DNA of 64,000 nucleotides from Iphione sp. A-MEVVRFRX5 (lineage: Eukaryota): contig OZ320315.1 of the NCBI GenBank assembly GCA_976226885.1, forward strand, positions 97,278,001-97,342,000, written 5' to 3'. The position numbers and the translations under genes are program-made. Positions 1 through 63,475 of this stretch are shown piece after piece; the stretch's first letter is position 1; each line of letters starts with the position of its first letter. The notes below the pieces were generated by a model. That model was not told the DNA's origin, did no database searches, and saw only the letters and a list, made by a program, of their open reading frames with translations.

Positions 1-77
1 ATATATAACCACAAAATTCCCTCTTTTTAAAGGGACATTTTATCCAAAACTAAATTTACATTATGTACCCAAACTTT

Positions 78-760
78 CTAGATATCATCTATTGTGACTG
101 ACTCCTTTATTTCCCAATCACAGTTATTTAGAGCTTCTTTCAAGGTCAGAAAATTATATTGACGGTCATCCCTCACCCATTGCTCGGAGATAGTGTTTCC
201 GTTTAATTTTCTTAAAGTCAACATAAGTAAGGTATAGTGATCACTGTTACCTTGTACCAATACTCCTGATCTACAAAATCTGTGGTCGATGTGTAGAAGT
301 GATCCAGACAACCTAAACCAGCATGGGTACTATCACATATAATTTGTTTTAAACCTAAATCACAAGCCATCTCAACATAACATTTTATGATTCTTGTTAA
401 GGAATTTAACTGACTTCATCAAAAACGATAACATTGCTCACGAATTTCCAGTGGGTGGTCTATAGATTACAAAAATCAAATGAAACTTACGATTCCCCAT
501 TTTTACCTTAACACAAAGGATCTCCCCATCTGGATCCATCATGCACCCTTCTGGTAGTATTCGAGTCCACTTATAAAGCCACTCCACCCGCTCTCCTCTT
601 GCCTACTCTCTCTCTTACCCGAGCATATCTAAAACAGGTATATCCATTTATCGATATCATATTGTCAAGGAAAACAGGTGTTAGCCAGGTTTCAGAGAGC
701 AAAAATATCAATCATATTTAATTTCAGTAGATACTCAATTTCTGACATTTTCCCCAACAT
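78..760 (-). pseudogene. Degenerate APE (exonuclease-endonuclease-phosphatase) domain of LINE ORF2, copy J; the element continues beyond the left edge
   Basis: The minus strand near 700-560 reads FLLSETWLTPVFLDNMISINGYTCFR. ORF 78..311 has the APE C-terminal signature HIDH...SGV...GNSDH. The region is frameshifted. Confidence 0.8.
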
Positions 761-979
761 ACTTCTGCAGTTCCAAGCTGCTATGCGTAAGTGAGTCATT
801 TTAAAGCGGCCACTTCGAATATGATACGAGTTAAAAAAAGAAGTAGAAGAAGTATATAGATAGAGGATTATGGTCGATAGGCTAATAAATGGTGGTAGGT
901 GTCATCATAATTTAATTAAATCAATTTGTAACATTAGCTATGCTCCTAGGCAGCAATTCTGGTACTGTCGTCGTGGCTA

Positions 980-1592
980 GATCTTAGAGAAATTAACGCA
1001 AACTGAACATGAGTGCAATGGCATTACATATACTGTACCCCCAGTCCTGCACAGCCAAGTCACCGGGGTGACAGCCATCATAGAGTAGAGCGAATTTTGA
1101 ACGGTAGCGTGTCTTATCCCATCTGTGTATCGGTAGGGCTGTAGCTGGAGTAAATACATCATTGTTAGCATTTAATTGTCGAAACACATCATAAAAACAA
1201 TATTATTCAAAACAGATTGAAAAGTCCTTGTCGCAGTTAGTGGGCTGTAGACAGCAAGATCTATACTAACAATTGGTAGATATCCTACACGGGCACCTAT
1301 ACCCCACCTCCTGAATCTTGCACACAACTCTTGATCAAATGCAGTTACCCATAGTGCCCAAGTCTTTGTCATCCTGAAGTAGTGATAGTTTCTTACTATG
1401 CCTATCACAATGGCATAGGTTGTTAATACTTAACATTATTAAAATAAGGTTATACTTGCGACAATCATTCTCAGCAGCCCAGTCAAACACGTAGTCCAGT
1501 CTGGCACCAGGACGATGCATAAACCATTGAGTGTCTATATAGTTCAACAGGTGCCTACCGCGAGAGTCACACAATATCAGAACTGAATACAA
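980..1592 (-). pseudogene. SGNH/GDSL hydrolase ORF of LINE copy J (frameshifted)
   Basis: Block I-like VLILCDSRG, then HRPGARL and LILIMLSINN (1335..1592). C-terminal YDGCHP lies in ORF 993..1187. Confidence 0.8.
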
Positions 1593-1881
1593 TTATGCCA
1601 GATAACAACAACGTGGTTTACAAAATTGAAAATTAAGAGGTTAGTGTAGAGAAATTTAGAAAAAGGCACAATATCAGAGAGATACAACACAGTACTTTCA
1701 GTGATATGGCTGTGAGTAATGGGCAGCCAGGCAGGCAATTGTCCAGTATAAGTTGTTGACTTGTAGTTGCCTGATGTATCCGACTTCCACACACGTGCCA
1801 GTTCAGTCAGTCAGAGTGACCAGGTCAAGGTTGACAGTCTAGAAAAGACCTAATTATAATTAGCACTATCATTGAACCTTG

Positions 1882-2058
1882 GGCAGACACTTGCCACCAT
1901 AGGTCAAGGTATGTAACAACAAATCATAATATCTAAGCCCGATGGGGTAGACACTTACCATAAGCGAGCACTACAGTGTTATCCTATCAGTAATGGTAGA
2001 CACTTACCATGTATCGATATGATATGAGACAGTAATTTACTGCGGGTAGACAATTACC
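1882..2058. repeat. Four copies of a 14-bp quasi-palindromic motif GGTAGACACTTACC with unrelated spacers
   Basis: Copies at 1882-1895 (GGCAGACACTTGCC), 1946-1959, 1995-2008 and 2045-2058 (GGTAGACAATTACC). Start-to-start spacing is 64, 49 and 50 bp. Confidence 0.85.
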
Positions 2059-2166
2059 GCGTTCAGCAGACAAGTAGTCCTGTCACGGATACCACACATT
2101 CATTTCCTCCTTTCGCATAGGCGACATTTGACACCAGTATCTGAAAGTCATAGAAAAGCAAACAAA

Positions 2167-2469
2167 TTATTCCAGGTTTTGCCTAATCTCCTCGAACAGT
2201 ACCCCATATTCATTCTCGATTGGATAGACAGTTTCATCAAAGTCCTTTTCCCAAAGCATTTTACCTGAACCAAGCCACAAGTCCTTCAATGCGAGAATAG
2301 GCCTCTTTGTTCCAGTCACTTTTAACTGCCCTCGTGCAGTATCGTGTTGCTGAAATTTGCAGAGAAGGCTGGTTTTTAGGGTCATGCGTTTCACTCGAGT
2401 CCAATCCTCATTTACCCATACACCCTGGCCTTTTCTGCCTGAAAGTGGTGCTCTGTGGACTCGTAACAT
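2167..2469 (-). pseudogene. Internally deleted LINE ORF1 remnant (L1-type C-terminal region joined to the NADAR C-terminus), copy J
   Basis: GVWVNED matches the ORF1 copy at 9308..9787. KDLWLGSG...ENEYGVLFEEIRQNL matches the NADAR tail pattern D..WG.G...G.N..G.LL..VR..L seen at 49246..49971. Confidence 0.65.
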
Positions 2470-2892
2470 TCCCCTCTCATAATGAACGGAGTCGACGAGA
2501 AACTTGAGAGTAGGGTATGCTCTTCTCGTAACACAATACTCGAGGGTGTTTAGTGCTGTTTTTCTTCTGTAACTTTGGGAGAGCCTTCTTCTGAGCCTTT
2601 GGGAGAGCAGGCTATTTCAGGCCTCTACACACGAAAGCCTCACCAGTATAGGACGTGGACATTTTTTTTTAAATTCCAATATTTCCCCTGGCAATCCATG
2701 TGGTACCAGGATTTGACTACATAGTTATTTCATTCATCTAATTCTATGTACATCGATTATTTACAATATTTACAATATTTACACACAATATACACGATAT
2801 ATACAGAAAAACATAATGCACACGACCATCATGTTATTGAGTTTGAGGTTTAGCAACCATTTGTGAGTTACATGGTTTAGATGCTTACTCTC

Positions 2893-3140
2893 TTAATGAA
2901 CCCTCCAGTTCTCTTTCAGTAGTTTGTTTACGATTAGTTTCTTTAGTTCTCTCTTGAAATGTTTTTTGTTATTACAGGCATTTAATTTCAGCTTGTTCCA
3001 TTGTTTCACTGCAAAGTATAGTGGGCTGTACGAGTACATGGTACAGTTCAGTCTTTGAGTTGGGATATTTGCCCTCCTTAGTCTGCACTCTCTGTTTGCA
3101 GTTACATGTAATGGCACCAGTATGTCATAATGGATACAGA
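2893..3140 (-). pseudogene. 3' end fragment of a LINE ORF2 (post-RT C-terminal region)
   Basis: RLRRANIPTQRLNCTMYSYSPLYFAVKQWNKL resembles the ...SF.Y...K.WN.L tails of the other ORF2 copies in the window. Confidence 0.65.
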
Positions 3141-3142
3141 GG

Positions 3143-4790
3143 GAATAGAATAGAATAGAATATCTTTTTATTGTCATCAAAGGTCTCCTGTGTGAGCTCT
3201 TCCTAGGTTGACAGTACATAGGTGAGTCTTATCGTTCTATACATTTTGTTTGTTAACGTGTTTTACATACAAAGCTGTTTTGGCATTACTATGACGTTTA
3301 GTGATTCGTAACAAGTTTATTAGTCCATACGACTAGTGAGTTCTTCCTGTAGGTTACTATGTCTATCTAGGAGGAACCCGAGATATTTATATGAGTTCAC
3401 TTGTTGAAGTTTGTTCCCATTGATCCCAATCTTCAGATTGTAGTGCTTGTGTTTACTTCTGATTGAGGAGAACAGTATGGTCTCAGTTTTTTGATAGTTA
3501 ATTTTTATGCCATTTACATTGCACCATTTGTCTAGTCTTGCAATTTCTTTATTGAGTGTGTCTGTTATCCTCTTAGGGTTTGTGTCCGAAAATAGTATGA
3601 CAGTGTCATTGGCATACATTATATACTTACTATCATAAAAGCAGGCAATACTGTCATTTATCAACAGGGAGAATAACATAGGCCCAAGGATACTCCCCTG
3701 GGGGACACCCAAAGGCAACATTGCTTCATCAGAGATATATTTTGATAGCCGTGTTTTTATGAGCCTGTCTGTCAGGTAGTTAGTGAACCATTCCAGGCTA
3801 TCACCAAAACCCATACACTTCATTTTCTTTAGTAGTATAGAGTGTTGTATAGAGTCGAATGCTTTGGCGTAGTCTACAAAAATGGCACCAGTTATCTTGC
3901 CATTATTCATACCTTCAGTTACGTAGTTTATTACTTTGTTTATGGCATGCATTGTTGATTTCCCACGCCTAAAACCAAACTGCTGAGGTGATAGTATTAT
4001 TGTTCTCATCTATGAACCGTTCTGCTTGTGTATGTACAATTTTCTCTAGTATTTTTGTCGGTAGAGGGAGGAAACTAATGGGTCGGTAGGAGTTTGGGTG
4101 CATCTTAGTGCCTTTTCCTTTATATAATGGTGTTATACGGGCCTATTTCCAGCTGCGTGGAATTATCCCTGTCTCTAATGAACAGTTAAGTAGCATTGTC
4201 AGTGGCTTGATTAAGGCAAGTAGACATGTTATGATAATTCGAGCTGGGTAGTGAGATATGCCACTAGGTTTATCTATGGACATGCCTTGGATGATTTTTT
4301 TAATTTCTGGTTCATTACTATTGTTGAGCACAAAGTTTTTTTTGACAGGGATTGATATTATCTGTTATTAGTTGGCTCTCGATATCAAAAGACGAAGCAA
4401 CTACCGTTGCCAAGTGGTTATTGAACGTATCTGCACTTTCCTCCCATGTCATCATCCTTCTACCTTGGGCAAGTTGAATTTCATTACCGCCTCCCTTATT
4501 TTTGAATAGCCCCGTTATGATTTTCCAATATTTCTTGGGGTTACCCTTATATAGTTCTACCTGTCTCGTTATGTAGTTTGCCTTATCCATTGCCAGTGCC
4601 TCGTTCACCTGTCGTTTCATTTCAATAGCGGATTGATATAGTGTTTTACTGCCTAATTGTATTGCTCTTTTGAAAAGTTTGTTTTTATTGTTGATCAAGA
4701 CTCGGGTTTCTTTGCGTACCCAGATATTTGATTCAGTGAAGTTGGCACTCGCTTTTTCCTGGGCAATCTCATCAACATTGTCTTTCATTA
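3143..4790 (-). mobile_element. 5'-truncated LINE copy I: linker + RT, with AATAAA + (TATTC)n tail
   Basis: ORF 3320..4009 has QFGFR, GAIFVDYAKAFDSIQH, GVPQGSILGPMLF and YAND(=YADD), followed by YKYLG. Linker ORFs are 4143..4331 and 4318..4788. AATAAA is at 3172-3167 on the minus strand, followed by (TATTC)4 at 3162-3143. Confidence 0.9.
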
Positions 4791-5231
4791 ATCACACACA
4801 CCAAGGCGCTTGGGCTTAAAAAAATTTAATTGTTCTGTCATGGTATAAAGAAATCCCACATGGATAATAATTGACAACTTATGATTATATTAATACATAA
4901 AATGACGGAATAAATATATGTGTATGTTAATTGCTTGCCTCCTGTAGCTTTGATGTAATGTAGGGTGGGTGGGAGGTTCATGCGTACAGTGCAGCAGTCA
5001 GCTGCAGACTGACCGGTCACTGGACTGGACACGCCTAGGTTGACTAATGAACCCACAGAGGGCACCACTGCCCCCTGCGAACCCATTAATCACACACACC
5101 AAGGCGCTTGGGCTTAAAAAATTGTATTTGTTCTGTCATGGTATAAAGAAATCCCACATGGATAATAATTGACAACTTATGATTACATTAATACATAAAA
5201 TGACGGAATAAATATATTTGTATGTTAATTG
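4786..5231. repeat. 148-bp direct repeats (4786-4933 and 5084-5231) flanking a unique 150-bp segment; B-A-B 3' end of a Ngaro-like element
   Basis: Two near-identical copies start CATTAATCACACACACCAAGGCGCTTGGGC and end TATGTTAATTG. They begin immediately after the YR stop near 5240. Confidence 0.85.
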
Positions 5232-7960
5232 TGCCAAGACTAGCTGATATACGTGTTGATTGCATCTGACTGTCAGTCCCCCCTGTGTTTGACCTGTTCC
5301 CGTGTTAAACCTGACGCCATAGCATGTCGTGCGCCCCCATGTCTGAGGCCATGTAAGGTCATCCTCTCATCCAAGTCAAGAACCGACAAAGCCTGCTTCC
5401 AGAGTACGCCTGATAGGTGTGTTGCTGATAATACACAGTTGGCGCTTCTTTGAGCATTTGCCCGTACATTTTCTGCATAGAGAAAGGGGCTGCATCGTCC
5501 TCAACCTGGATGACAAGGGGTTTAGCCATAGCTTGTCAAGACTTAGTCCAACGAACAGAGACCAAGCAATATGCCCCATCAGAAGTAAAATCACCTTGGC
5601 ATAATTGCCTCACTGGGTCGAAAAGAGCCCCATTTTTTGGGAGCATGTTGGACTGACGCAACAGGAATTTAAACATGAGAAATATCACAAATGCGATTGA
5701 GTGTGAACCTTGTGGAAGATCATAAAAGAAATGCCTCGCAGCAGCCATACAATTGAAGCAGTCCAATTGAGATATATGATAACCACGAAAATTTGTAGGC
5801 CACTGAAATCGATAGTAGAAGGCATTGTCTGCAGCGCCTGCACCATCAAGACAGGCGTCCACCACGATACATTTTACAGGGGGTGGTGGTCGAAAATATG
5901 ACCTTCCATTGTATACCTGCATGAAATGAATTAACCATTGAATGTCTTTCTGGAGCTGAGGTGAAATCTCAACGCTTTTGTTACTCAATTGAGACAATTG
6001 CTAAAGAAGTGTGGACATAAAATTTCTCAAGACAGGTACAATCTTGGCAACGTGATTAAGAATGCCAGCTAAGCTCTGTGCTTGGGTGATAGTTACCGAG
6101 TCCTTACCAGGAACATAATGCAGTTGATTATGATAGCGTTGAATCTTCTCTCTTGGAATAGATAAGACACCCTAATTCATGTCAACATTCACCCCCAGCC
6201 AGCAAATGAATTTTGATGGCGGCTGGATTTTATTAACCGCAATAGTCAGACCTAACTGGGTAATGACACTTTCAACCAGCTCGAAATGCTTACACGCCTG
6301 ATCATAATTTTGTGAGATCACAACGAGGTCGTCTAAATACATTTAATGCTTTAACACCTTGATTTTTGAAAAACTGTAGTATAAATTCTGCGACCTTCTG
6401 CATGACAAAAGAGCTGGCCCTTGCCCCAAATGGCAGCACGGTGTCGTAATAGTACCTGTGATCCTAACAAAACCCAAGAAGGGGCCAGTCATTGCCTGTA
6501 TGCCCTCTTGAGGTCAATGACAAACAGGTATGGGGCGTCATACTGAAGGATCTCGGTTACCAGATCTGAAATGGTTGGCAGAACGTTTGACATTTGTACG
6601 GCATAACAGAATTTTTTTGTATACATGAATTGATATCTGATTTTTCAAATGACAAATCAACGATAATGCGACGACCGCCAGTTGACTTCGCCCGAGACAT
6701 CAAAGGAGAAACATTAAACCACGGACTAAATGGCCCAGAACAGTGCTCGGATTTCTGTGGATATATATTCGTGAACACTTTCTGGAAACAGATTAGCAGA
6801 TGGGTGGTTAGGACAATCATAATTTGAGCTTAGTGAGCTGGCATATTGCAACGAGAACCCGTATTCGAGGCCATCCAACACGATGGTATCATCGGTGTGG
6901 CCTGTGGCGATCATCCTCCACTGGTCCCTGTTGAGAATGGATTGAGCTGTAATACGGGCTCCCACAGCGTTGGGAGCTCCAAACGATCTTCTGACAATGG
7001 GAGCCATCGTCAGACGTCATTGCTGGCCAATATCGAGCCCTGAGAGGGTGTAGGCCAGCAGTGAACCAGGGCGTAGGACTTGGCTGCGGATCTAAGTCTG
7101 AAAGCAGAGTAATTGTGTAATTGATTAGTGAGACAATCAACTGGGGTATAATCAGGTGTCGAGGACATCTGTAGCAGGGAGGACTGCGTATGTGGTGGAT
7201 CCGTGAGACAGATCAACTGTGATGGGTTGTCTAGTAGTTTTTGTCGTGGCTGTGGACGCGTCATGTTGTGCCAACGGGTCTGACTTCTTCCAGGCTGACT
7301 CCCATTGCCCACGAGAGTCTTGGCGCTGCACTGGCTCTTGCTTGGTGACCATACGTGACTTCCGGGCGCAGGCTGCCACAGTGTGCTTGCACTCCTGGTT
7401 CCCGACACCATACCAGCACACGGCGCAGAGGTGGACTAACAGCATGCCGTCCATGCTGTGGCTGTCATCATTGGGGCATGCAGCGACATTGTACATTGGG
7501 CAAGGATGTCGCCTGTTTTCATCTGCAATATTGCCTCTTACCACCGACATCCTTGTACACATAGCTTGGATGTCAGCGGCATGGGCCCAAGTGATGTTAC
7601 CGTGGTTTATTTCATCAATTAATGTAAGTGACCACATGCGAACAGCTTCCCATTTACAGGACACCGCATCCTCTGCGAGATTAGCAATATGGTCAATAAT
7701 ATGGGAGGAGTTCTTAGGGTCAGCCTTTGCGGACATGCACAACCCAATAATGTGCTCAAACGGTTCTAGGTCATCTGCATTTTGTCTCTTCTTAACATTT
7801 GGAATAAGCCACCTCGGCAGTGCCATATAAGGCTTAGCAAAGCGGACAAATTTGTCGTGTACAGGGTCGTAAATGTGCTTACCCTTCACGTCTGTCGCTT
7901 TAGCTTTAGCCACATCATCTCTGCTGTTAGTGTGCATTGATTCAATTCAGCGTGAACCAC
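4786..7960 (-). mobile_element. Ngaro/DIRS-group tyrosine-recombinase retrotransposon, copy 1 (degenerate gag, RT, RNase H, YR)
   Basis: gag 7152..7937. RT N-terminal PLMSRAKSTGGRRIIVDLSF (6557..6820) and YLDDLVV near 6330. RNase H VVDACLDGAG...HISQLDCFN (5536..5997). YR tail TLHGLRHGGA...RGD*QSDAINTY near 5350-5245. Confidence 0.9.
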
Positions 7961-8191
7961 ATTGTCGCAGAGCACGCCAAATTTCACATATATGATTATT
8001 CCTCCACCCTTTCTGTAATTTCTATCTTGCCGGTATATGGTATAGTTGGGCATAAGTACACTGTTGTCAAGTATTTCATCATCTAGCCATGTTTCAGATA
8101 TCAAAATATGTGGTCGTTCGTTTGCTATTAGAGTTGCTATTTCCAATGTCTTTGAACGTAAACTTCGAATATTAATGTGGATCACTTTCAA
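7886..8191 (-). pseudogene. N-terminal APE fragment of LINE copy G, truncated by Ngaro copy 1
   Basis: IHINIRSLRSK...ILISETWL...YRQDR..RKGGGIIIYV. Confidence 0.9.
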
Positions 8192-8589
8192 GGGTTCATT
8201 ATCACTAATAGAATTCTTGCTTATATACTGGAATACTAATTCTTAATCTTAATAGAAATCGAGTAATGATTAATAATGATCGAAAAAGGATATGTTATTG
8301 TCTGGCTGGGGGAGACAAAACATACCTCTTATCAATAGACATAGATATATCAGGTCTTTCACGAGACCTGTGAATGCCGATCAAAGAAAAAGTATGAAGT
8401 AAAGCAGTGATCAGGTCTCATACGAGGCCAGTGATTGCAATGTACTTCAATTGCATTTTATTTTACTTATTCTGCAAATGTAACACATTTTCTAGTCGGT
8501 AGCACACAATGAGTCCGGTCTCATAGCATTGAGACCCGGGACGAAACAATCATTACCCTCTTAGTGCTATAGTTTCCTAGTGGTACAGT

Positions 8590-9201
8590 TTACCGAGAGA
8601 TTTTGCTGTTCTCTATCATGTCCATACGCCTGTCAGGCCCCAGGTGGCATCCGTCACTCAGCTTTTGCAGCTTGTTCGTTTGGCTGCCATTCGAGTGTCC
8701 GTGTACAATGTTCCCCACATGAAGAGTTAGGAGGCCATGGTGACCGTTGAAACATCTAATATATCCGTTGATTCGATGCACACTCTGCATTCGCAAGGGG
8801 TGCGATTTCTCTGCAATAGACTCACCAAGCAAAGTTTTGTTATGTCTTGCTACATCAGGGCACAATGTTTCTGAGAAAATTATAAAACTGTTCAGAAAGC
8901 GTTTTTTAATCCTAGCATAGCAAGTATCAATCAAAAGTGTAATCCTCATATATGTCAAGTCAGTATCATCGTCAGGCACGGATATCTGTCTACCAAGACT
9001 TCCGTCAGACAGTGTTGCATGGCGGTCCATGTTTGTAATGTCGTTAGTGCCCACCAAAATAACTATATAGAACGGTTGGATGCCACCCTGAGCTATTACT
9101 GGGACATGTATTCCACTATTGGATAGGTCAGCCTGTAGACCCTTTCCATGTGAGTCAGTAAAGAAATACACGTCTGGTGGGCAGTTTTTGTTGAGTGCCA
9201 T
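8590..9201 (-). CDS. SGNH/GDSL hydrolase ORF of LINE copy G (open, 203 aa)
   Basis: FFTDSHG (block I), QGG, ILVGTNDI (block III) and LSDGCHL (D-x-x-H). Confidence 0.8.
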   Translation of the reverse strand: MALNKNCPPDVYFFTDSHGKGLQADLSNSGIHVPVIAQGGIQPFYIVILVGTNDITNMDRHATLSDGSLGRQISVPDDDTDLTYMRITLLIDTCYARIKKRFLNSFIIFSETLCPDVARHNKTLLGESIAEKSHPLRMQSVHRINGYIRCFNGHHGLLTLHVGNIVHGHSNGSQTNKLQKLSDGCHLGPDRRMDMIENSKISR

Positions 9202-10150
9202 CGTCGTCTTGCGATCCCTGTTCCGTGACGGCGGTCTCTGGACTGAGACCCGACCTCACTCTATCCAGTATTTCGCCCGTCCAGTTCTCTCCTTCAAACC
9301 CTGTGTGTCAAGCTGCCTTCTCTAAACTGATGCCTGGGGGGAGTCTATGAAGGGTTTTACTTGTGTAAACACTCCCATTGATTACCACTTTGTTCCCCTC
9401 TAATTTCGTTTCATGCTTTAACTCCTTCGCCAAATTGTGTATGCTTCTCAGCTCAGCTCTGTTCATTTTGTCTGCTGGGGTGAGGTCTTCATTTACCCAT
9501 ACACCTTTGAGGGTCTTAAGATTGGCTCTGCCCTGTAGGATTTTTGAGCGTGAGTTTGCCTTGCATAACCTGACCTTAATGTCTCGATGTTTACCCACAT
9601 GCTTCTGACCTAGGCGGTAACAGGTGTCAATTTCGTCGGTTTTAAATGCTTTGTTAGCTTTTTGAAAGACTCTGCATACTTGCTTACACAGACTGTCATA
9701 GGTCTCCCCCACATCTTCAGTTAGACCTGATATTATCAGGTTCGCTGATCTGCTTTCCCTTTCCAGTGCTTCTAACTGTTCACTCATATCTGTGATGCCT
9801 TTACTGTGTGTTTGTGGGCCACTTTCCCTTTGTTACACCTCTGGATTCAAAGTCAGTCACTTTAGCTTTTAGGGTGGCATTTTCAGACTCCAGTTTGGCA
9901 ATTCTGTCTTTATGGTCACTTAAGTCACTCTAAATTGTACTGATTTTTGCTTTGTTTTCGCTAATGCCTTTTGAGAACGAGTCATGCATTTATTTGGTCT
10001 CTGTTTTGTGTTCATTTAGAGTGTCAAGAACTTTTTGTAACATAGTGTGCAATTCTGTTTTGAACATGTTTTCTCTGGTAGTTTGGGTATTACCTCAACT
10101 TTGGATGGATTGACATTACCAGAGTCGCAAAGGAAACCCTCTTCATTTAA
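9200..10150 (-). pseudogene. LINE ORF1 of copy G: coiled coil + L1-type RRM region; most of NADAR deleted, C-terminal motif retained
   Basis: DRIAKLESENATLKAK near 9900. ORF 9308..9787 has LERESRSANLIISGLTE...CYRLG...VWVNEDLT. GENWTGEILDRVR near 9290-9250 is the NADAR tail. Confidence 0.8.
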
Positions 10151-10201
10151 CCCCACCGTAGACTCTTCATTATGCTTCGCAGTATCAATGTGAGAGTCAT
10201 A

Positions 10202-11675: not shown

Positions 11676-11941
11676 AAGGACTACCCCGAAGCCAGGGGCG
11701 AACCTTTAAAATGTTAGAAGCATGCACATGTCTCAACAAAACGGGCACTGTCGTGACTGCTTGTTGCCCTAGACATCGCGTCAGCTACAGTCATCTGTGC
11801 CCCGGGGATGTGCCTATATACAATGTCCACCTCACAACGTGCCTGGTGAAACCAAATGTCCCTGGCGGCAGACAAAATGGCCGGATCCCTACCGCGGCCT
11901 GAACAAAAGACATTGATCGCAGCTTGATTGTCGCAACAGAC

Positions 11942-51006: not shown

Positions 51007-51129
51007 TATCGCCCAGTGTTCCTGCTTTATAGATTATTTTTAGTCCTAATTTAGCCCTTGGATCCCTGAGTCCTTTCCGGCGTGGGCCACATATATCGCG
51101 GGTAGGTGTTGCGTACTTTCACTGGCTTT

Positions 51130-51680: not shown

Positions 51681-51797
51681 GATTACTGGTGAGTAGCTGG
51701 GGAGAAGGGCAAGGCTTGTTAATACTTACTATGATTTTCTTATAGTGGTGATAACTTGGGCGTTTTGGTGTCCCTCAAGTGGTCTCCTGCTGGTTTT

Positions 51798-53307
51798 TTA
51801 GTCTGCGTGGGCCTGGACGGTGGACGATACTGGCCATGTTCCCCTCACAGGCCCTGGCCCATGAAAAGGGTGTGTGTAAGCTAGACTAATCGGTGCCACT
51901 GCTTGGGTTGTCAGGCACATCATCACAATGTTGTCTTGTCCTCGTTCGATTTCCTTTCTGGTCTCTTGTTCTAATTTGCGTTTGCAAGCCATAATGTATT
52001 CTCTGCTCTTTGCTATATCTGATGTGCTGAGTTATACAGGCTATTTCGGTACTGCCTTCTGACCTAGCTCTTTCTGCACTCAGCAGCAGCCACTTCCATT
52101 TCTATACGTGCATGTCTCTGGCTTAGTTTGCATAGAGTAACAATGAGTCTTCCTCACCCTGGCAATAGGCTGGGAGTTGGCTTGTGTTGATATAGCATCT
52201 CATGATGAAACTCATGCGGAGTCATAGCAGACAGTAGTCCTTACCTCATAGTCATAGCAGACAGTAGTCCTTACCTCATGGGCTATTTATCTCTGGGCGG
52301 TGTTCCAGCTTTCCTTGTAATACTGAGGCAGATTTTGTAGCCATGGTTGATCATGGTTTAATGTGGATTTTTTTGTTATTGGGTTTATTTCTTCTTTCGG
52401 TTGGTTCGCATTTGATTTTCTACTGATAGAGCCCCTTGTTCTTTTTGCTATAGGTTGGATGAATGCTAAGCTCTAGCCTCTTTGAGGTGCTACCGAGTGG
52501 TCTCAGTGTTGCTGAGTTAGGTCAGCGGTTCAAACCTGTTTTTTTGCATTCGTGCTTACCAGGATTTTCTCATTGCTATTACCTGAGCTTCTGCGTCGCT
52601 CAGGGTATAGGCGCTTTTTTTAAAGCCTGACTTTCGCTGTTGCTGTCCCTGAAGGTTTTGCTCACAGGTCTCTTCGTCTGCGTGGGCCTGTGGGTGCCTC
52701 TGTACCCCCCTCTTCCCCACAGGCCCATTCTCTGAAAAGGGTGCTGATAGGTCGGCCTGGTGTGACTCTGGCTGACGGGGGCAACTACACTGGTGGTTAG
52801 TGAGGCCATAAGGATGGAGTCTTGCCTTTTTTTTCTAAGTCTGCCTTGGTTTCCCTTTCTACCCTGTTCTTACACTGTATTGTATATTCCCTGCTGTCGC
52901 TGATTTGCTGGGGAGTCAGTTTAGTCTCTACGCGACCTGTCTGAGTAAGCTTCATCTTTGGCTTGGGTGGCAAGTCTCTAATAGACCTTCTGCAATATCA
53001 GCCATTAACATCTTGGCATATCTCTGCCTTTTTTCACTAATCTTGCATATAAGATCTGTTTCTTTCTCTAGATAGGCTGGTAGGGCGGAGGTATTGATGC
53101 AGGACTGATAGATGTAACCTAACTGAAGGTTTCGGTTAATGAAATGAAATCTCTCCTGACTTTGCTTTTGGATTCATTTACTAGTTTTCTCATTGCATTG
53201 TTCCATGATTCTACATAGGATGGGGTTAAGGTTTTCAGCCAAGGTTGACTCTGAAAAAGAGAAGTGTCCCTCTTAGATCGTTCTTTTGAGATGGGAGTCG
53301 GTTCCAA
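51798..53307 (-). other. Two diverged tandem copies of an unidentified degenerate ORF
   Basis: QPWLKTLTPSYVESWN (53230) vs QPWLQNLPQYYKESWN (52350); QDSILMASLTTSVVAP (52820) vs QDNIVMMCLTTQAVAP (51930); both are followed by HPF. Confidence 0.55.
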
Positions 53308-54271
53308 TACAGTTTGGGATTTGGTTGGGGTTGATTTCTTGGCCCTTTTGGTCTAATTTTGACTCATAAGTGACTGAGTTGGATCTTTTTCGTTTGTTGT
53401 GTGAACTGTGTGTCATGTCTTTTATATTCAATGTTCTAAGATCAGTGGTGGGTGCTGAACAGTTCGAATATAGTTTTCAGAGGTCTGATATAGTTTTCAA
53501 TATTGAGCGTTTCACTGAATCCACTCTTAATGCATGCTGATATGTGCTTACCTCGAGTCTTGATGAAGCGGTCACAATTTGTTTGTGGTGACCAGCTTCT
53601 TCGGCAGTGCCGTGGGGTCTCATATCGAAGTCAGTCTGTATGTCTGCGTGCGCGAGGTGGTTCATATGGCTTATGTCTTGTCCCTCATCAATGGGGTGTG
53701 ATCCCATGTCGTTGTCGTGACCACCTGGAGTGCATAATGATGTTAGAGTCTTGGCCGGATCCATGCTTGTGTGTGCTATTTCCCGCTGATGAGCCGGTTT
53801 GGATTCTATTGGTTTTTCGTCAAGTTGTTATGTGACTGGTTAGTCTGCATTGTATCTTGTTCTTTTGTGGCAGCTAATGAGCCTGCTGGTTCGATGCTCT
53901 GGTCTGAACTAATGAGTTGAGTAGTATGGGTGCGAACTTTCTCCTTGAGGTCCATGGTTTCTCTAGACGGGAGGTGTTATTTAATAGGTTCTGTTCGCAT
54001 GAGTCTTTTCCCTGTATTTTTATACAATTTATATGGCGATGTATACCGAGTCTGCTAGTGGTGTGGATAACGTCTGGTTGTGTGGTGTAATTTGGTGGGG
54101 TATGTGTCATTGTCGGCATGAAAAATGTTTTTAACTTTGCGACAAAAAGAATTGGTATTATAATGTGGCGTACTGCCCTCAGGCGGTTGTTTCCCCACTT
54201 GAGTTGTTCTTAGAATGTTATGTAATATGGGGGTTGACCACTTGACTGTCATGGTCCGTCGGGCACTGCAG

Positions 54272-57200
54272 TTAGTGCGATTGTTTACCATTTATTTCGA
54301 AAGGCGCCACCTGGTGCAACGTCTTTGAATTATATGCAAGTGTGTAAACACACACTTTAGACGGTGAGCAAGGGGGTGGGGGGCAACCAGATAGGCTAAG
54401 ACGGCCATCGACGCCCAGTCCCCCCTCCAGAAAGTGGTTGAAAGCCACCCTGGACTGGTGCATGCGGGTGGCCGCAACTCGACACAGGCTGTGAAAGCCG
54501 ATGTCACTTGCTTTGCACCCAACTCTCGATGCCCATGTCTTCAACCAACCCAGTGCCGTCAGGTAGGGGAGCTGCACCCCGTCTTTCAGGAACAGGAGGT
54601 CCGAGGGGGACCCTGGAGTGGTTGCGACAGAGCCAGTGTGCAACGCAGAGGGCTTTGCAGTAGAAATTGTATGCTGATAACCCGCCTGAAGCCGTGTGGA
54701 AGGTTAGCTCGCTTGTGCATCCAGATCACCCAAGACAAGTAATTCTGGATAGTGGAGTATGCAAGGTCATTTGACAGGTGCGCCAGAAAGCGAGGGACAG
54801 TCGGGGGAGAGGCTAGTGGGCCACAATCCCGAGGGACCCAAAGAACTCTGAGAACCTCCGCCACTGCGAGGTCCTGGCTTGATTAGTGTTGTTTGCGAAC
54901 GCCCCAAGACTCCAGGAACAGCCTCCTCCTGTCGACATCCCCGAGATCTGCAACAAAGTGTGTAGCAGTCAAAGTGTGACAGGCCCACAGAACCATAGCG
55001 AGACAAGCAGTCGGCAATCACGTTGGCGTTGGTTGGGATGTGTCTAGCTGTTATATGAAAGTTATTCACAGCAGATAGACAGATAACCTGCCTAAGCACT
55101 ACCATACAGACTGGGTCGCGCGATATGCCAGTGTTGACCAAATGTGTACAGGACAGCGTGCCTCGCGTGCCAGTAGGGGCACCATCTGACCATTGCCATC
55201 AGTTTGCAGATTTCATCTGTATTGTGCTGAAGTTCGTCACCCCGACGGGGTGCTTATTCTAACATTGCTCATACAAACACTTAATGCTAAGCCTGAAGAG
55301 TTTATTTCCTGTAACTCAGGAGAAAATTAGTTGTCGTAGATTACTTTATAACTTGGCCCTTGTCATCTCTTTACTGGAGCTTGGTAACTCATTCTAAATA
55401 CGCCCTCCACGATATCTGAAGCCACGCCTGTAGGCCTCATTTGACGGCTTGGGTAGAGCAACCAAGGGTGCAGCCCTTTGTCTTGTACGACCACCCTGTA
55501 CAGTTTCACATATCTGCAAAGAGACCATAGCCTGATACAACAGAGCAACATGATATTCACTACACTGGAAATAATCCATCATTTTATTGTCCCTCATCCA
55601 TTGTTTTGTCTCCTCACTGCCCTGATGAGGCATTTCTGCAGCTGGTCCCGGAGTGAATAACTTGCACCCATCTCGAACATGATGCCTTACTCTAAGTGGG
55701 AGACAAAATAAGCCGTAAAGACCAGGATCCTCATTTTCCTATCAAGAAATGGTCTTGCCCGACGAAGCAGATATACCATGCTATTTAATTTCCTTAACTT
55801 CTTCTCAATTGCTGGTCTAAACGATAGTCGGTCGTCTAACTCAAATCCTAGGAAATTAAAAGAGGTTACCCTGGCTACCCTTGCCCCATGCAGTTTCAGG
55901 TCCAGCTCAATTTCCCTGGCCCTACCCAAGGACATATACCTATTTTTACTCTCATTCAACAGAAACCCATTCTCTTAACACCACTTTGAGATTTGTCAGC
56001 GTGAATTGAGCCTTACGAGACAGGGCCATGGCATTTGATCCCCATGTGTATACAGTCACATCGTCAGCGTAGATTGAAAGCTTGCTGGGGAATGCTACCC
56101 TCACAATGTTATTTATTGATAGCAGAAACAACCACGGCCCCAATAAAGGGCCCTGAGGAACGCCGGTTGCAACATCCCTTAATGATGACATTTTGTTGTT
56201 GCATCTGACTAATTGTCTTCTGTCTGAAAGGTAGTCACTGAACCAACCCACCACACGGCCCCGGTAGCCAAGGTTCCTCATTTTGCAGAGAATCATGTCA
56301 TGATTGGCCAAGTCAAATGCCTTTGACATGTCGAGGAATGCACAGGCAGCATAGCGGCCCATATTTGTATCGACATATATGTCACCCAGCAAACCTGAAT
56401 ATGCCAGAGGCGTTCCACGTCCCTTCCTAAATCCCCCAGCTGCCAGTCTCCTGACCTAGTGGCTCCGTACCCCTGCATGCTTGTGTCCGTCTTGATGCAG
56501 TCTGTAGAAGGGTCGTGGGGGATGATTATCTTATCCGAGGCATTGAAGGTAGCAGCAAACTGGATCCACCACTGCAGGTCTTTGTGGAAACCACGTTCCA
56601 AACGCAATCTGCCTGCCTTGCTCCTCTGGCCGACACCCAGGGTATCGATGACCCTCCGGCAGAAGGTGCGGCCCCCTCCGACGACAGAGGCACAATGGTT
56701 GAGGACGCCTGAGAGCCATTAAAGTTGACGTGTTGTTGCTCTTGGCCGACTGTGGAAGAAGTCGAGGTCTTTGTGCAATGCCTGCAGCTTGTGGTCAGGG
56801 AGGCGTAGGAACATCTGTTATGCGTCAGTCTCAATTCCCAGGAACACGAGTTGTTCCAGCTGATGTAGAACCCCAGCGACCGAAGCAGTTGGATGGTGGC
56901 CAGGAGGTCCTGTGTGCATTCCTCATATGCTGGCGCTACAACGAAGAAATCATCCAGGTAGTTGAGGCAGCGTATGCCCCGGTGATGCAGACAACAAACT
57001 ATAAAGCAGCTGATCCTATGGAAGAAGTACGGGGCCATCTTGGCCCCTAAACACTGGCAATTGTCCCTCAAATAGCATGTGACGCCAACAAAGGACCACC
57101 TTATGCTTTGCAGCTCCCTGTCAGCCGGATGGACATTGACTGACGGTATGCCGCCTTTATGTCCACACAGCACGCGAAATAACTCGGCCGGATAAGACCA

Positions 57201-57400
57201 GCCACTTTGTGAATCCTGGCAAAGGAGAATTTGTCACTACAAATGTTCATGAAGTTGTTGATAGAGGTACCTGGCAGATGGCTACTGTCGTTGATGGGGC
57301 AGAAGCCCCCTCCTTCTTGGGGACTGCGCCCATGGCATGGACGTGATCAGGCTTTCTTTTTAACTTTTATCCTGGCAACATACCAAGGTCTAGCCATAAT
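54272..57400 (-). mobile_element. Ngaro/DIRS-group copy 5 (RT, RNase H, YR), interrupted in RNase H by LINE copy K
   Basis: PKKEGGFCPI near 57320; YLDD in 56526..57173; RNase H N-half KTDTSMQGYG (56293..56607); C-half VRWCPYW...HIPTNANVIADCLSR (55240-55010); YR GFHSLCRVAAT and GDWASMAVLAYL (54272..54643). Confidence 0.88.
55255..56392 (-). mobile_element. 5'-truncated LINE RT segment, copy K
   Basis: FLDMSKAFD, GVPQGPLLGP and YADD (55952..56392); FLGFELD...LRRARPFL (55687..55959). Confidence 0.9.
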
Positions 57401-57449: not shown

Positions 57450-58600
57450 CTTACTTTATTCCAATACTAGACTATAGCCTTGGATCCATCCATGCATATC
57501 AAGTTTTTATTACCTGAATTGCAATGGACCAATTAATTTTTACGGAATGCCCGATTAAGTTAATGAAGAATTTTTCTTACTCATCTTCGTCTTCATCTTC
57601 ACATTGCGGTCCAGAATCAGTCCTAGGTACTTGCACGATCGTAGATTGTATTTCCTAAGTTCATTATTATACCATTTGAAGAACACCAGTCATTAAATCT
57701 GTTAACATCATTTGTTAACTCCTTAACGATAAACGGGTCTTCATGGGCAAATTGCAGAATGGTGTCATCCGCATACATCACAGTATGGGAAGACTTCACT
57801 ACTTCTATACTGGCATTTATTATTGATACTGGTTATTATCGACTTGCCTTCCAAATATGATTTCAGCCTTTTTCTTCATCTTTTCTAGGAAAATCCTATG
57901 CTGAATACTATGGAAAGCCTTTTGATAGTCAACAAATATTGCCCCTGCTACTATGCCTTCATTCATTTTGATATGAATGTAATGAAGTACATCATTGAGG
58001 AGGTCAATGGTTGATTTAGACTTCCTGAATCCATATTGATTACCACATAGTAATTTATTTTTCTTAATTATATCAGACGTTCAAGAATTCTTCGAAAAAT
58101 TGGTAAAATATAGGTCAATGGCTATTAGGATCAAAATGATCTCCTTTACCCTTTCTAATATAGGGGAATTATGAGTGCAATTTTCCAACTTCTTGGATGT
58201 CGACTTTTCTGTATCATCAGGTTTAATAAGTCTGTAAATTCCGTTATCATCAATGAGAGAGGCAAATCTTAATATCCTGCAGGGTTTGTTTTCATTCAAT
58301 TTTTCAATTTACTTTGATCACCTCGGTTTCTAATAGTGGTTTAAATTGAAATTCCTCAGATATATGTTGTACATGTATTATCTCCCCGAGGACACTATAT
58401 TGCATGTTTGTACCGTTGTTGGTCAAATATATTCGTTGTTTTCAGGGTGATCCACGGCTTGCATGTAATTGAGTGTGTTCCTGGTGAGGCTCAAACTCAC
58501 AATCTTCAATTCTTTGGTCAAGGGCCCATCCGATTAGGCCATTCAGTCTGCTGCATATTGTATTACTATTGTATTACTGTGTTAGTACTTTTTCGCTGTA
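57450..58600 (-). mobile_element. Heavily deleted LINE linker/RT segment, copy L
   Basis: KPWIT near 58450; NQYGFRKS, GAIFVDYQKAF and MYADD near 57780. Same RT subfamily as copies I, D and C. Confidence 0.82.
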
Positions 58601-58639: not shown

Positions 58640-59720
58640 TTTGTTTTTCTTTATTTTTTCTTTATGGAAATTCCATTTCAAATGTTCTACTTGGAAGTTT
58701 CAGAATGAGAGTTTTTACAGATTCAGGTAGAGTTATACAAAAAGTAATTTTGCTTTGCTTCTCACTAAGATTTCTTTAAGAATTACAGCATTTGTTGATG
58801 TTTCATTGACTTGTTCTGTTTCTTTTACTGGTTCTGGTTTGTTGAGATCATCCTTGTCTCCAAATAGATCCAAGCCTAGATCAAACGTGGGTTGTTTCTC
58901 CTCACTCAGTTGTGGTGATGTTTCTTTCATCAGTGGCGGCTGTAATAAATCCTTAACAATTTCATATTGCATTTGAGTTATGCCCACTACAAACTGCTAT
59001 GGCTTGTTTATCTACACCTTCTTCGTATAGTCTGGTTCAACATGTGGCTTTGCCTGAATGCCCTGTTATATGCCTACCCTCCATATTAATTCCAGCTTCA
59101 GTGCACATTTTATGCGTGTATATATCCAGGGTATGAATACCTATCGGTTGAAGTGAAAGAGAATTTACCCTCTAAATTAGGCAATGGACATCTATATATT
59201 TCCTAAAAACCTACAATGCATTGTTGATTGTGAGGGTTGCTATAATGTCAAAAAAGCCTCGGTAGGGCCTTACTCTCATTAGCTCCAGTAACAGCTTTTG
59301 CTAGTTGCCCATGGTATGTTAGATATTCTCTGTTTTCTTGGTCTAGGTCAAGACTATATTGCTTTATTTCTAAATTTGCATGTTCGTCATGAGCTCTAAA
59401 TCCAAATATTTTACAGTTATAAAAATATGCTCCATAGGAGAGACCTGCCCTTTTGGGGTGGGTCTAGGGCGTCCATGAATGTCTTGAAATATGGGTCATC
59501 CTTTTTGAGTAGCCACACACCTCATGTCTGATGTCATCTCTGATAAGTCTCTGGAAGCCTGCAGTGATGCTGCAAAATAACAGTCCTGAAAATAGATTGG
59601 GAGTACAATATAGATTTTTGGGTTCCCCCCAAAATGTTTTAATATTTACCTGGTGGTAGGCTTCCGTTATAAATTGGGCAAGCCAATAAATAATAATCTT
59701 TATTATCCAAGCCTGGGATA
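58640..59720 (-). mobile_element. Crypton copy 4 (degenerate, intron 59586-59649)
   Basis: YWLAQFITE...YPPG|...SITAGFQR, GAYFYNCKIFGFRAHDEHANL, ITGHSGKATC*TRLYEEG and SGHNSNA. Confidence 0.85.
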
Positions 59721-59728: not shown

Positions 59729-60760
59729 TCATGTGTTGCAGGATGCCAATTTCTCCAGATGTGCCAATCTCTGAAGATTTAGACGGCCCAACTGGAAGCA
59801 GATCTCATCAAATTTGGAATCGGCGACAACCCAGTCCGTCAGGTCTCCTGTGAGGACTTTGGTAGTGACAGCATGTTTGTATCTGGCCAGGTTCTCAGGG
59901 GAGTATCCTCTTTTTAACCCCTTGAAGGTCAAAATTCTCGACCGAATGACCGGGGTAACCGTGTATAGGCCGGGAATGTTTGATGATGTACGCCACACAC
60001 TAGTCATACCGTAAGTTAGCTCACTGAATGTGTTGTTACAACCGCTCTGGTTGAAAGCGAGAATTTCCTGGTGAGCTCATCGTATCTCCTCAAGTCTATG
60101 CTCCAGGTGCTGCTCCTCCGATCCTGCTTGGCTGCGAGATGTGATTCCTCCTCCTGAATGTGATTCTGCAGCCAGGTAAGGTACTCCGGCGGTTAGGGTG
60201 GAACTTTCTGTGGTGGTTGCTCCCCTGGTTCAGGCAAGGGGGGGGGGCGCCTAAACTTGCGCCTAGATTAGCACCTAAACTAACACCTAGGTAAGACTGA
60301 TCGGAGTTGGGGAGGGCATAAATCTGTTGGCAACTCGCTCCAACCAAAGGTGGGCGACATTCCCCCGACACGCTAAAGTCGTGCTCGTGCTAAGAAATTT
60401 GAATCACTAAGGGGCTAGGCCCACAGCAGCACTAGCGATGGTAAGGCAGGCTACCTGCCGAAAGTGTGCAGCGTACTCATCGAGTTTGGCTGGACAGTTC
60501 AGCTAATGTAGTGTCGATCCTCACCCCAAGCCAGGTGACGACTGATGGTTGGGGGGGGGGGGGGGGTTGGAAGGTTTCCTCTGTGACCCTGAGGCCTAGG
60601 TCCTGGATTAATTGAATCGTCCAGTGGTATGCAGCCTCTCCCTTGACGATGTCCGGGGCTGTGATGACCACACCATCCAGATACATCAGCAATTTTATTC
60701 CTCGAGCTGCTGCAGCCCTCATAATGAACCTTGCTTTTCGCTGCCCGTGCATTGAAGAAC
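59729..60760 (-). mobile_element. Ngaro/DIRS-group remnant (RT fragment + YR N-terminal fragment)
   Basis: LLMYLDGVV...VTWLGVRIDT (60477..60752); RILTFKGLKRG...AVTTKVL (59729..60007) resembles the YR core-binding region. Confidence 0.7.
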
Positions 60761-60854
60761 TTCTGGCGCCAAATGTTATGGCCGTGTCGAAGAAATAGGT
60801 AAAGCTGATGCGAATCCCGAGAAGTGGCTAGTCCACGGGTCAGACGTGGAACTG

Positions 60855-62250
60855 CCTCTAAAGCACAGCTGCCATTTTTTTCCTCTTTAGGCCAATATGG
60901 CCAAGTGTACAAATAAATTGCATATTGTCATTGTTTGGATTAGTATTTGGAGGTGTGAAGGAGGTGTGAGAGAGCAAGAGATTGGAACCGTGTCACTCTT
61001 GAAGCTGTGAAAAGAATTACATAAGGAACCAACAATGGTGGTATGAATGTTAACTTTGGCATTTAATAAATAAATAAAATGGAAGAAAACAGGAATAACC
61101 ATATACAAATCAAGTAGAAAAAGATATTATTGAAAACACTGAAATATATTTTATGCAGTTAACTTACAATTCCACAAGCACCTTCTTACCCTGCTTCACC
61201 AACACGACCTGAATGACATAAGCTGCAACTAGAACAGTGAAAACATTGCAGTTGACTAGACTGCGGAATCTCTCTTGAGATAATTCCGGAGTATTCACCT
61301 GACATACTGAGAAGTGGAGGGGACAGGACTTACTTCGTAAGGTGGTGACTGGATAATTGTCAATTTTTCTGGTAAGACAGACATTTGCTTAGGGGGGGGG
61401 GGGGTTATACCGCTGGAGACCCGCTGCAATATTGGTCAGGGTACCTGATGAAATATAAATATATAGGAATTTGTTAGAATCTTGGCTAAATTGTCATTTT
61501 GATGGGAAAAATGTAAAATTCATACGTTCCCCTGGGAAATATTTTACTAACCTGAAGGGTAATCTTCGTTGTCCTTTTTGCGGATTTCCGTTATAAATCG
61601 TGCAAGCCAATAATCCAGAAGTCTCAATTTTTCTGTTTTCAGGAAAAGGCCAATTTGGGTCTATCTGTGATGCTATTTACTATTCCTCCATGTTCGCCAT
61701 TGGCCCTCAATGACGAAGCCTGCATATTTTATGGAATACGCTGACTTAATTGAATCTGAAACTCCTCCTGTGACACCACCTCTGTTTAGCATTCATCCAA
61801 ATGTGAATAATCAACTTCCTGGTCTGACAATTCGAGTGGTGGAGGAGTTTCCAGCTGTGAATACTGCTGTGAGCACTGTTGTCAAGCGAAATGCTGGGAT
61901 TCAATTTGATCCAGCTGAGTGAGAATAATATCCAAACCTGGATTGAAATTTGGCATTTCATACAGCCAACCTTCAATGTTGAGGGTCAGGACTGCAGTGG
62001 TTGAGTTGACGTTGCATGTAAGGAAAGGGTCGAAATTGTTTGACTAAAGCTGTGAAAAACCAAAGCATGAAGATGTTTGTGTGTGTGTCTGTGTGTTAGG
62101 GGGGGCATGCTTTAAGTTAGATACATACCTTGTAGAGCGTGTACTTGATACATTGCCACCCTAGGGATACACTCAGTGTCGTCTCTTGCTAATCCCTAGT
62201 GTGGCAATATATCATGTACACCGCTCTCCTCGGTATGTATCTATAACGTA
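60855..62250 (-). mobile_element. Crypton copy 5, internally deleted (non-autonomous-like), intron 61445-61551, both end regions retained
   Basis: WRTWRNSK...LLDYWLARFITEIRKKDNEDYPSG|TLTNIAAGLQRY jumps to VIQVVLVKQGKKVLVEL* near 61165. The 3' block is homologous to copy 1. 5' palindrome 62119-62242. Confidence 0.85.
62119..62242. repeat. ~50-bp-arm palindrome at the 5' terminus of Crypton copy 5
   Basis: AGATACATACCTTGTAGAGCGTGTACTTGATACATTGCCACCCTAGGGAT pairs with 62192-62242, with a few mismatches or bulges and a 23-nt loop. Confidence 0.9.
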
Positions 62251-62301
62251 TGCGTTTCTGAGATCACCTGTCCAGCCATCTGATGGAGTGTCGCGGTCAG
62301 G

Positions 62302-62863
62302 TCATTGGTCGTTGGTAGAGAATGCTTGTGCTGCATCCCACTTCTTCTGCACATAACTATTGACGCCATGTCCTGGAGGGAACGATGGAGCCACTATGAC
62401 GCGTCGGCTGCTGTCGCTCCTAGGCCGAATCATCAGAGGCGCTTCAACAAACCAGGGCTCAAAGGTTTTTCTTGTGGTTAAAACGAAGGATATACCATAG
62501 TCTATGATTGGCAGAATGAATGCCTGAAACACCCTTAGCAGCTCTTTAAGTAGTAACAAATGACAAACCTTTGACAAACCATATGCTCTCTGTCTTAGCC
62601 TTGCTCTAATTTTGTCCACCATTGGCTTCCAAAGGATCACCAAACAAAAACCACGGTGATGGCGGACAGTCCTCTGACACCAGTCTCTTAAAAGAGGCAG
62701 GCAAAGATGGTTTCATCTGCTCCCTTCGATGTTTAATAAGGGACTGGTGGGCAGACCCCAGCTGCACCAGGGCGTCTACCAAAGCATCATGGGCGGACTT
62801 GGCCCAGGTATGCTGCTCCACCATGGGGGCTATATGCTCGAGTGCCCTGCACCCCGCAATCAT
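62302..62863 (-). pseudogene. Fused scraps: DIRS-type gag fragment, LINE RT C-terminal fragment and DIRS/Ngaro RT N-terminal fragment
   Basis: HRREQMKPSLPASFKRL...LFGDPLE (gag-like); FQAFILPIIDYG (LINE); PWFVEAPLMIRPRSDSSRRVIVAPSFPPGHGVN (YR-retro RT). Confidence 0.7.
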
Positions 62864-62899
62864 GCCCCTATATTCTTAGATCATCTATGTTTCCCTTTT

Positions 62900-63475
62900 T
62901 CTATACTCTTTTAAAAAAAAGTCCCTGTTTTTCCTAGCCTCTCTTATCACAGTCAATTCCTTGTTTCTTTTCTTTTTCTTCACCCCTGGACACAACTCCC
63001 TCGCAGCATTCTCAATACCTTCCTGAAGTATATTCCATTTCTCCTCTGCTGCCATATTTGGTCTTCCCTCTAGGTTATTCTTTGTCTCAGATAACCAATC
63101 TTTTATTGCCCATCTATCCTCCCCTTTCCAAGTACCTTCTCCAATAATGGCTCATCTGTTTTGTTCCATGAGTTTTTTTATTTACTAGATAAACCGGGAC
63201 ATGATCATTCACGTAAATATGCAGCACCGCTGCCTCTAACACATGTTTCATGCTGGTACATAAAATGTCCAGTATGCTTTTGCTCAACTTGTAGATTATT
63301 GTTGGCTGGTCTATGTACTGTTCTAACCTAGTTGAACAGACACCTGCTGTTTTTTGACCAGTCAATGTTAAGGTCCCCTCCTAAAATGATGTCGGGATCC
63401 CTTTTATTTGATATTTCCTTCATAACACTCAACAGCTCTTTCATCCCAATAAAGCCATCACTCTGTGAAACGTTC
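62900..63475 (-). pseudogene. LINE APE C-terminal fragment and linker
   Basis: IILGGDLNIDW (63328..63555) and LHIYVNDHVPVYLV (63114..63365). Confidence 0.75.

Follow-up and report, generated by a model that had tools for sequence, protein, structure and literature searches.

The 64,000-nt window examined here (C4:97278001-97342000 of the Iphione sp. genome, in a 1.18-Gb assembly of 89 contigs) lies within an array of transposons that is packed end to end, free of genes and verified over at least 264 kb, and every element in it that can be oriented lies on the minus strand. The elements belong to three classes: long interspersed nuclear elements (LINEs), DIRS/Ngaro-like retroelements and Cryptons. 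We consider it somewhat better than an even chance (a probability of about 0.55) that the locus works like a uni-strand, flamenco-type cluster, that is, a candidate source of PIWI-interacting RNAs (piRNAs) and a trap for transposable elements. The window contains no runs of N, and the extended region of 264 kb consists of the window plus the 200 kb upstream of it (pieces L001-L020).

Strand polarity of the array

Stop-to-stop open reading frames (ORFs) of at least 100 amino acids (aa) in the window sum to 14217 aa on the minus strand versus 2729 aa on the plus strand. Searched against Pfam, the 89 minus-strand ORFs of at least 90 aa gave matches to RVT_1 (13), Exo_endo_phos_2 (five), Exo_endo_phos (four), NADAR (three), DUF3504 (three) and Phage_integrase (three), and 20 further minus-strand window ORFs matched no Pfam family. 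No family was found in the 30 plus-strand ORFs of at least 90 aa, and the 95 plus-strand ORFs of 62-89 aa yielded a single match, at chance level. A tblastn comparison of all window ORFs with the window gave 216 non-self minus-to-minus matches and none to the opposite strand. About 24 segments could be oriented (about 14 LINE, six DIRS/Ngaro and four Crypton), and all are minus, for which the chance is about 1e-7. The first-pass annotation of this DNA had counted about 30 segments of three unrelated classes on one strand, and the present count is close to that figure. Reverse transcriptase (RT), apurinic/apyrimidinic (AP) endonuclease, NADAR, tyrosine recombinase and DUF3504 domains occur only on minus-strand ORFs, in line with its claim that every recognisable segment reads on the minus strand, and the plus-strand fragments that it might have missed were sought with Pfam profiles without any transposon domain being found among the 125 plus-strand window ORFs of at least 62 aa.

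The polarity proved to be stronger than had been stated, since it has no exception over at least 264 kb. The minus-strand excess is present in every 8-kb bin of this region, and tblastn of the minus-strand ORFs gave 3545 non-self matches on the same strand and none on the opposite strand; the 82 plus-to-plus matches represent antisense ORFs of repeated elements. All of the distinct RT and recombinase cores are minus (57/57), namely 37 LINE RT, 16 DIRS/Ngaro RT and four Crypton recombinase cores, and so are the further cores of LINE endonuclease (22), NADAR (13) and DIRS recombinase (four). Comparison of the 264 kb with itself at the DNA level gave 69 direct pairs and no inverted pair. In the upstream part, the 150 minus-strand ORFs gave 29 RVT_1, 11 NADAR and 13 endonuclease matches in Pfam, together with GDSL and recombinase matches, and the 89 plus-strand ORFs of at least 100 aa gave neither a transposon family nor a gene family. 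No Pfam family of LTR (long terminal repeat) elements or DDE transposases was found among the 239 minus-strand ORFs (89 in the window and 150 upstream), and the array seems to contain no elements other than LINEs and those with a tyrosine recombinase. To the right, a Crypton copy 27 kb beyond the window (C4:97369275-97369661) is also minus; a search of the genome for DIRS recombinase, aimed at the flanks, gave no matches near the locus.

Elsewhere in the genome, the same families lie on both strands of all large contigs (21920 candidates for LINE RT, 1108 for Crypton and 3080 for DIRS recombinase). The best 40 non-self Crypton matches divide into 23 plus and 17 minus, and close pairs of elements, in a small sample judged by eye, are mixed (about six concordant and four discordant). 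The polarity of the LINE, Crypton and DIRS families is thus local to this locus. Of the genome-wide comparison of strand bias that the first-pass annotation had envisaged, the occurrence of the same families on both strands elsewhere is established, from small samples.

The absence of any host gene or sizeable unique spacer, also noted earlier, was borne out. No host-gene domain was found by Pfam in the window ORFs, scans of the window for tRNAs and Rfam families gave no matches, and minus-strand ORFs or homology cover 60-78% of the 264 kb and 63-78% of the window itself, with no gap in the window longer than about 1 kb that lacks both. The ratio of observed to expected CpG is 0.55 over the 264 kb, and the TG/CA asymmetry, a possible signature of plus-strand transcription, does not exceed the value expected from base composition, which makes it uninformative.

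Three sequences of the upstream flank may be mentioned separately. A minisatellite with units of about 33 bp (L017:7892-8638, about 32 kb to the left of the window) is open in several frames on both strands; a mixed cluster of plus and minus ORFs, considered as an inverted element, was rejected because it is this minisatellite read in several frames. The longest plus-strand ORF of the flank (368 aa, L009:9308 to L010:411, about 110 kb to the left of the window) has no Pfam family and is probably an antisense open frame. One minus-strand ORF matches the PHAX RNA-binding domain (E-value = 1.8e-5) and could be a captured fragment of a host gene or a module of a LINE ORF1.

Independent insertions and orphan copies

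At the DNA level, matches of the window to itself are limited to nine short direct pairs and one palindrome, and self-alignment totals 15.8 kb in the 264 kb. Pairwise amino-acid identity among 27 LINE RT cores is at most 70%, with a median of 33%, which agrees with the mutual divergence of the copies reported at first reading, and the copies retain ORFs of 100-450 aa. Tandem Repeats Finder detected nothing relevant in the window and no periodicity. Such divergence among copies with ORFs of this length indicates that they diverged as active lineages before they were inserted here, and that they represent separate insertions and not local amplification.

This bears directly on the idea that a block with three types of element was amplified long ago, in tandem or segmentally, or that the locus is a former telomere-type array of head-to-tail LINEs. 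Although all of the repeats are direct and some of the LINEs do stand head-to-tail, the copies belong to different lineages with long ORFs, and neutral decay of duplicates could not have produced such divergence while the long ORFs were kept. Amplification is, moreover, largely refuted by the dissimilarity of the copies at the DNA level, where there is almost no self-similarity, and by their irregular spacing, which shows no periodicity. As to a telomere, the window starts at 97.28 Mb of a 118.41-Mb contig, and thus 21 Mb from the contig end; no runs of telomeric repeats were found in the locus, and recombinase elements do not add to chromosome ends. The HeT-A/TART-like head-to-tail array offered as an alternative in the first-pass annotation therefore loses its ground, given this interior position, the lack of telomeric repeats and the presence of non-LINE elements, and we regard amplification and telomere origin together as extremely improbable.

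Genome-wide DNA searches, which score the best candidates only and in which near-identical copies are expected to rank first, gave best non-self matches of 65-82% nucleotide identity for nearly all of the window copies. There are two exceptions. Alone among the long elements of the window, the LINE at 39359-44793 has a close copy elsewhere, at C26:25800420-25814698 (86-92% identity), and that copy is longer by an insertion of about 8.65 kb where it corresponds to window position ~41755. The other is a repeat of 233 bp (62637-62869), copies of which are 96-97% identical, numerous, and present on every large contig and on both strands. It has the size of a short interspersed element (SINE) or a miniature inverted-repeat transposable element (MITE), lacks an obvious tail and an obvious terminal inverted repeat, and cannot be oriented. 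It is a very young short element, and no other insertion in the window is both clearly recent and high-copy.

Targeted searches were made for two of the long elements. The best relative elsewhere of the three-ORF LINE at 44840-51080 has 67% nucleotide identity (72% at the amino-acid level in the RT), and that of the DIRS/Ngaro element at 10671-15077 has 71% nucleotide identity. Nevertheless, both of these orphans still hold long ORFs with few disabling mutations. The three-ORF LINE has about four to five lesions in about 1700 codons, including two in-frame stops in the 595 codons of ORF1 and about one stop and one frameshift in ORF2, from which its neutral decay is roughly estimated at about 1-3%. 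Low best identities elsewhere, combined with so few lesions, indicate that the locus holds fairly young single copies of lineages without a close relative in the assembly. In another part of the same contig, there is a long tandem array (C4:109067368-109124605) with a spacing of about 1.6 kb. Parts of its unit, about 390 bp and about 130 bp in length, match the DIRS/Ngaro element at window positions 13874-14266 and 14500-14650 with 71-76% identity, and the array has the appearance of a satellite that arose from a piece of a retroelement.

A one-way transcription unit as a proposed explanation

LINEs integrate by target-primed reverse transcription, and DIRS/Ngaro elements and Cryptons by means of a tyrosine recombinase. 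Because three integration chemistries share one orientation only at this locus, the polarity most likely arose after insertion, through selection on the direction of the elements relative to a single long transcript. Independent insertions of LINE, DIRS/Ngaro and Crypton elements would have accumulated in a locus crossed by this transcript. An insertion antisense to the precursor would give rise to silencing RNAs and be kept; a sense insertion would bring no benefit or would truncate the precursor, and would be lost. If the locus is built like flamenco, the plus strand would be transcribed, from a promoter to the left of the array. Of the features of uni-strand clusters, a large, gene-poor locus dense with remnants of many families and a strong co-orientation of transposons were found here (57/57 cores, none of 3545 matches opposite, no inverted pair). 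Such a cluster would further be predicted to have a single promoter, a long Pol II precursor that crosses the locus, and plentiful 23-32 nt, 1U-biased small RNAs of one strand, antisense to the transposons. By contrast, the transposons in both orientations that characterize dual-strand piRNA clusters are absent from the 264 kb. The structural half of the piRNA-cluster proposal made in the first-pass annotation therefore stands: LINE, DIRS/Ngaro and Crypton elements of different lineages are co-oriented over at least 264 kb, with no genes or satellites.

Several points weigh against the flamenco-type interpretation. With most copies only 65-82% identical to sequences elsewhere, piRNAs from them could not pair near-perfectly with the present-day families. 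The motif AATAAA is no more depleted on the plus strand than its base permutations are, although this signature is uninformative. The polarity is total, and hence more extreme than has been described for flamenco, and the content consists of LINEs and recombinase elements and not of the Gypsy-type retroviruses responsible for the bias of Drosophila clusters. Finally, the genome baseline against which the locus is judged consists of small samples.

Purifying selection against sense elements would also be predicted to produce this polarity in a long host transcription unit that plays no part in the piRNA pathway, be it a giant intron or a long non-coding RNA. Sense elements carry polyadenylation and splice signals, and it is well established that LINEs and LTR elements in introns are biased towards the antisense direction. 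However, host-gene domains were found neither in the plus-strand ORFs of at least 62 aa in the window nor in those of at least 100 aa upstream, the intronic bias of known genomes is moderate and not of the order of 57/57, and an intron or non-coding RNA of at least 264 kb made up entirely of transposons would itself be unusual. We therefore think such a host transcript unlikely.

Alternatively, a polar property of the locus might have set the orientation at integration itself: the LINE endonuclease or its priming step might prefer the A-rich strand or the tails of existing LINEs, in a self-reinforcing manner, or replication might proceed one way through the region. The minus strand is indeed A-rich and carries 59-79% of the L1-type target motifs (TTAAAA, 164 versus 81), two LINEs stand head-to-tail within about 47 bp of each other (44793/44840), and otherwise unrelated LINEs have in common a 3' end of about 65 nt (86-96% identity). 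Even so, a bias of 67-79% would give 37 minus LINEs out of 37 with a chance of only about 4e-7 to 2e-4, and a bias of motifs is irrelevant to the 20 recombinase-type cores (16 DIRS/Ngaro and four Crypton), all of which are minus (about 1e-6). To our knowledge, no replication-direction bias of such strength exists in animals. The orientation-biased targeting that the first-pass annotation had named as an alternative is weakened accordingly, and we rate an origin of the polarity at integration as improbable.

Going beyond selection on a one-way transcript, the locus might be an absolutely polar archive of little-decayed copies whose lineages are gone elsewhere, in which one insertion would extinguish a family and wrong-way insertions would not be tolerated; it would then be a trap stricter than flamenco and differently stocked, and we put this forward as a doubtful extension. 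An alternative novel reading would be a directional capture mechanism that acts across the three integration chemistries.

Composition of the window

Three layouts recur among the elements. In the LINEs, ORF2 comprises an AP endonuclease and an RT, an ORF1 with a NADAR domain lies upstream, and the middle ORF (cl3) is GDSL/SGNH-like, its relatives in the flank matching GDSL lipase models. In the DIRS/Ngaro-like layout, an RT precedes a tyrosine recombinase encoded on the same strand (10671-12964), and the Crypton layout consists of a recombinase with DUF3504 (20199-22202 and 30042-31155). The features of the window are as follows.

1-64000, no strand: whole window, transposon array; orientable elements all minus; continues at least 200 kb upstream
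999-3228, minus: LINE fragment with cl3 ORF (999-1589) and piece of NADAR ORF1 (2170-2616); ORF2 expected to the left of the window
3323-10339, minus: LINE with RT (3323-4791), start of endonuclease (7889-8242), cl3 (8593-9255) and NADAR ORF1 (9311-9832)
5539-7946, minus: DIRS/Ngaro-like fragment inside the preceding LINE
10671-15077, minus: DIRS/Ngaro-like retroelement, nearly complete, with recombinase (10671-11705; Phage_integrase, E-value = 7.5e-6), RT (11945-12964; RVT_1, E-value = 7.5e-15) and upstream ORFs
15528-18192, minus: second DIRS/Ngaro-like copy, RVT_1 at 16324-16962; best relative elsewhere 80%
18196-19461, minus: LINE ORF1 (NADAR-cluster) and cl3 fragments
20024-21231, minus: Crypton tyrosine-recombinase copy
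21842-22202, minus: second Crypton fragment, DUF3504 (E-value = 1.9e-8)
22641-26838, minus: LINE with RT (23261-24631), endonuclease (25013-25963) and cl3 (26356-26838)
27319-29612, minus: LINE ORF2, endonuclease and RT; a Crypton adjoins its 5' side
30042-31155, minus: Crypton coding region with recombinase (30042-30644) and DUF3504 (30685-31155)
32308-34307, minus: DIRS/Ngaro-like fragment
35213-36070, minus: LINE RT fragment
36877-39358, minus: LINE ORF2 and piece of NADAR ORF1; adjoins the 3' end of the following LINE
39359-44793, minus: LINE of 5.4 kb with ORF1-NADAR, cl3 and ORF2
44840-51080, minus: LINE with three ORFs, head-to-tail with the preceding LINE
51342-55198, minus: unclassified ORFs, with a NADAR-cluster piece (51342-51626) and a weak recombinase match (54275-54703, E-value = 0.031)
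55397-56455, minus: LINE RT fragment
56529-57233, minus: RT fragment (RVT_1, E-value = 1.7e-4), closest to DIRS/Ngaro RT
57874-58262, minus: LINE RT fragment
58965-59445, minus: Crypton recombinase fragment
60480-60927, minus: DIRS/Ngaro RT fragment
62305-62712, minus: weak LINE ORF2 fragment

Nesting of the elements, which had been proposed from the letters, is seen where the DIRS/Ngaro piece at 5539-7946 splits a LINE ORF2 into two parts (3323-4791 and 7889-8242). The fragments at 18196-19461 are probably two remnants, because their order does not fit one element. At the junction 44793/44840, two LINEs stand head-to-tail: the LINE at 44840-51080 has an A-rich tail, preceded by an AATAAA, and about 47 bp separate the end of this tail from the 5' end of the LINE at 39359-44793, which itself ends in a short repeat resembling TTCTGAT. 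The last ~65 nt of the LINE at 44840-51080 (44843-44909) are 86-96% identical to many sites in the genome, whereas the rest of this element has no relative above 72%; it appears that this 3' end module is common to otherwise unrelated LINE lineages. Two direct duplications of about 140-150 bp, with 96-97% identity and a spacing of about 300 bp, occur at 4786-4933/5084-5231 and 10197-10335/10506-10644. The sole inverted repeat found in the window is an imperfect palindrome of 126 bp (62118-62243) that is 78% self-complementary.

Comparison with known systems

The arrays of HeT-A, TART and TAHRE resemble the present locus in their absolute co-orientation and in some head-to-tail LINE junctions. 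They differ from the locus described here, which lies in the interior of its contig (97.3 Mb of 118.4 Mb), lacks telomeric repeats and comprises many unrelated LINE lineages together with DIRS/Ngaro elements and Cryptons. If the polarity was set by selection on a one-way transcript, the locus would also resemble the retroelements of introns, whose antisense bias reflects selection relative to a host transcript. The intronic bias, however, is statistical, roughly 1.5- to 3-fold, and occurs among exons, whereas the bias of the present locus is total, and nothing resembling coding exons was found on its plus strand. The total polarity makes it possible to ask whether selection enforces the orientation or whether it is already fixed during integration.

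In Aedes aegypti, a unidirectional cluster is described as similar to flamenco (PMC7161354); it runs in a single direction and provides a case outside Drosophila, its likeness to the present locus being the one-way layout. Small RNAs are described as defining the Aedes cluster, which is also known for its endogenous viral elements (PMC7161354), whereas the present locus, described from its DNA sequence, has no viral elements.

The flam-type clusters of Drosophila extend over 227-1085 kb and have strand-biased transposons (van Lopik et al. 2023, PMC10643416). In flamenco, the transposons lie opposite to a single long transcript, and the cluster is interpreted as a trap that records invasions. 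The array reported here is similar to flamenco and the flam-like clusters in its size of hundreds of kb, in its remnants of many families and in its strong co-orientation of transposons. In Drosophila, however, it is the env-carrying Gypsy elements that account for the flam-like bias, which other LTR classes do not show (PMC10643416), whereas our array consists of LINEs with a NADAR ORF1, DIRS/Ngaro elements and Cryptons, with no enrichment of env-carrying Gypsy elements or endogenous retroviruses; we could not find any rve, gag, protease, env or LTR-element domain by Pfam in the 239 minus-strand ORFs of the 264 kb. If confirmed by small RNAs, it would be a very large uni-strand trap of LINEs and tyrosine-recombinase elements and not of insect retroviruses, so that the flamenco design would be seen to arise with quite different transposon classes, and for annotators this region of C4 would be one functional unit and not random junk. 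It also differs from flamenco in that at least 57 cores show no exception to the polarity and in the age and orphan status of the copies, a content that offers a test of whether the copies in a cluster outlive their families.

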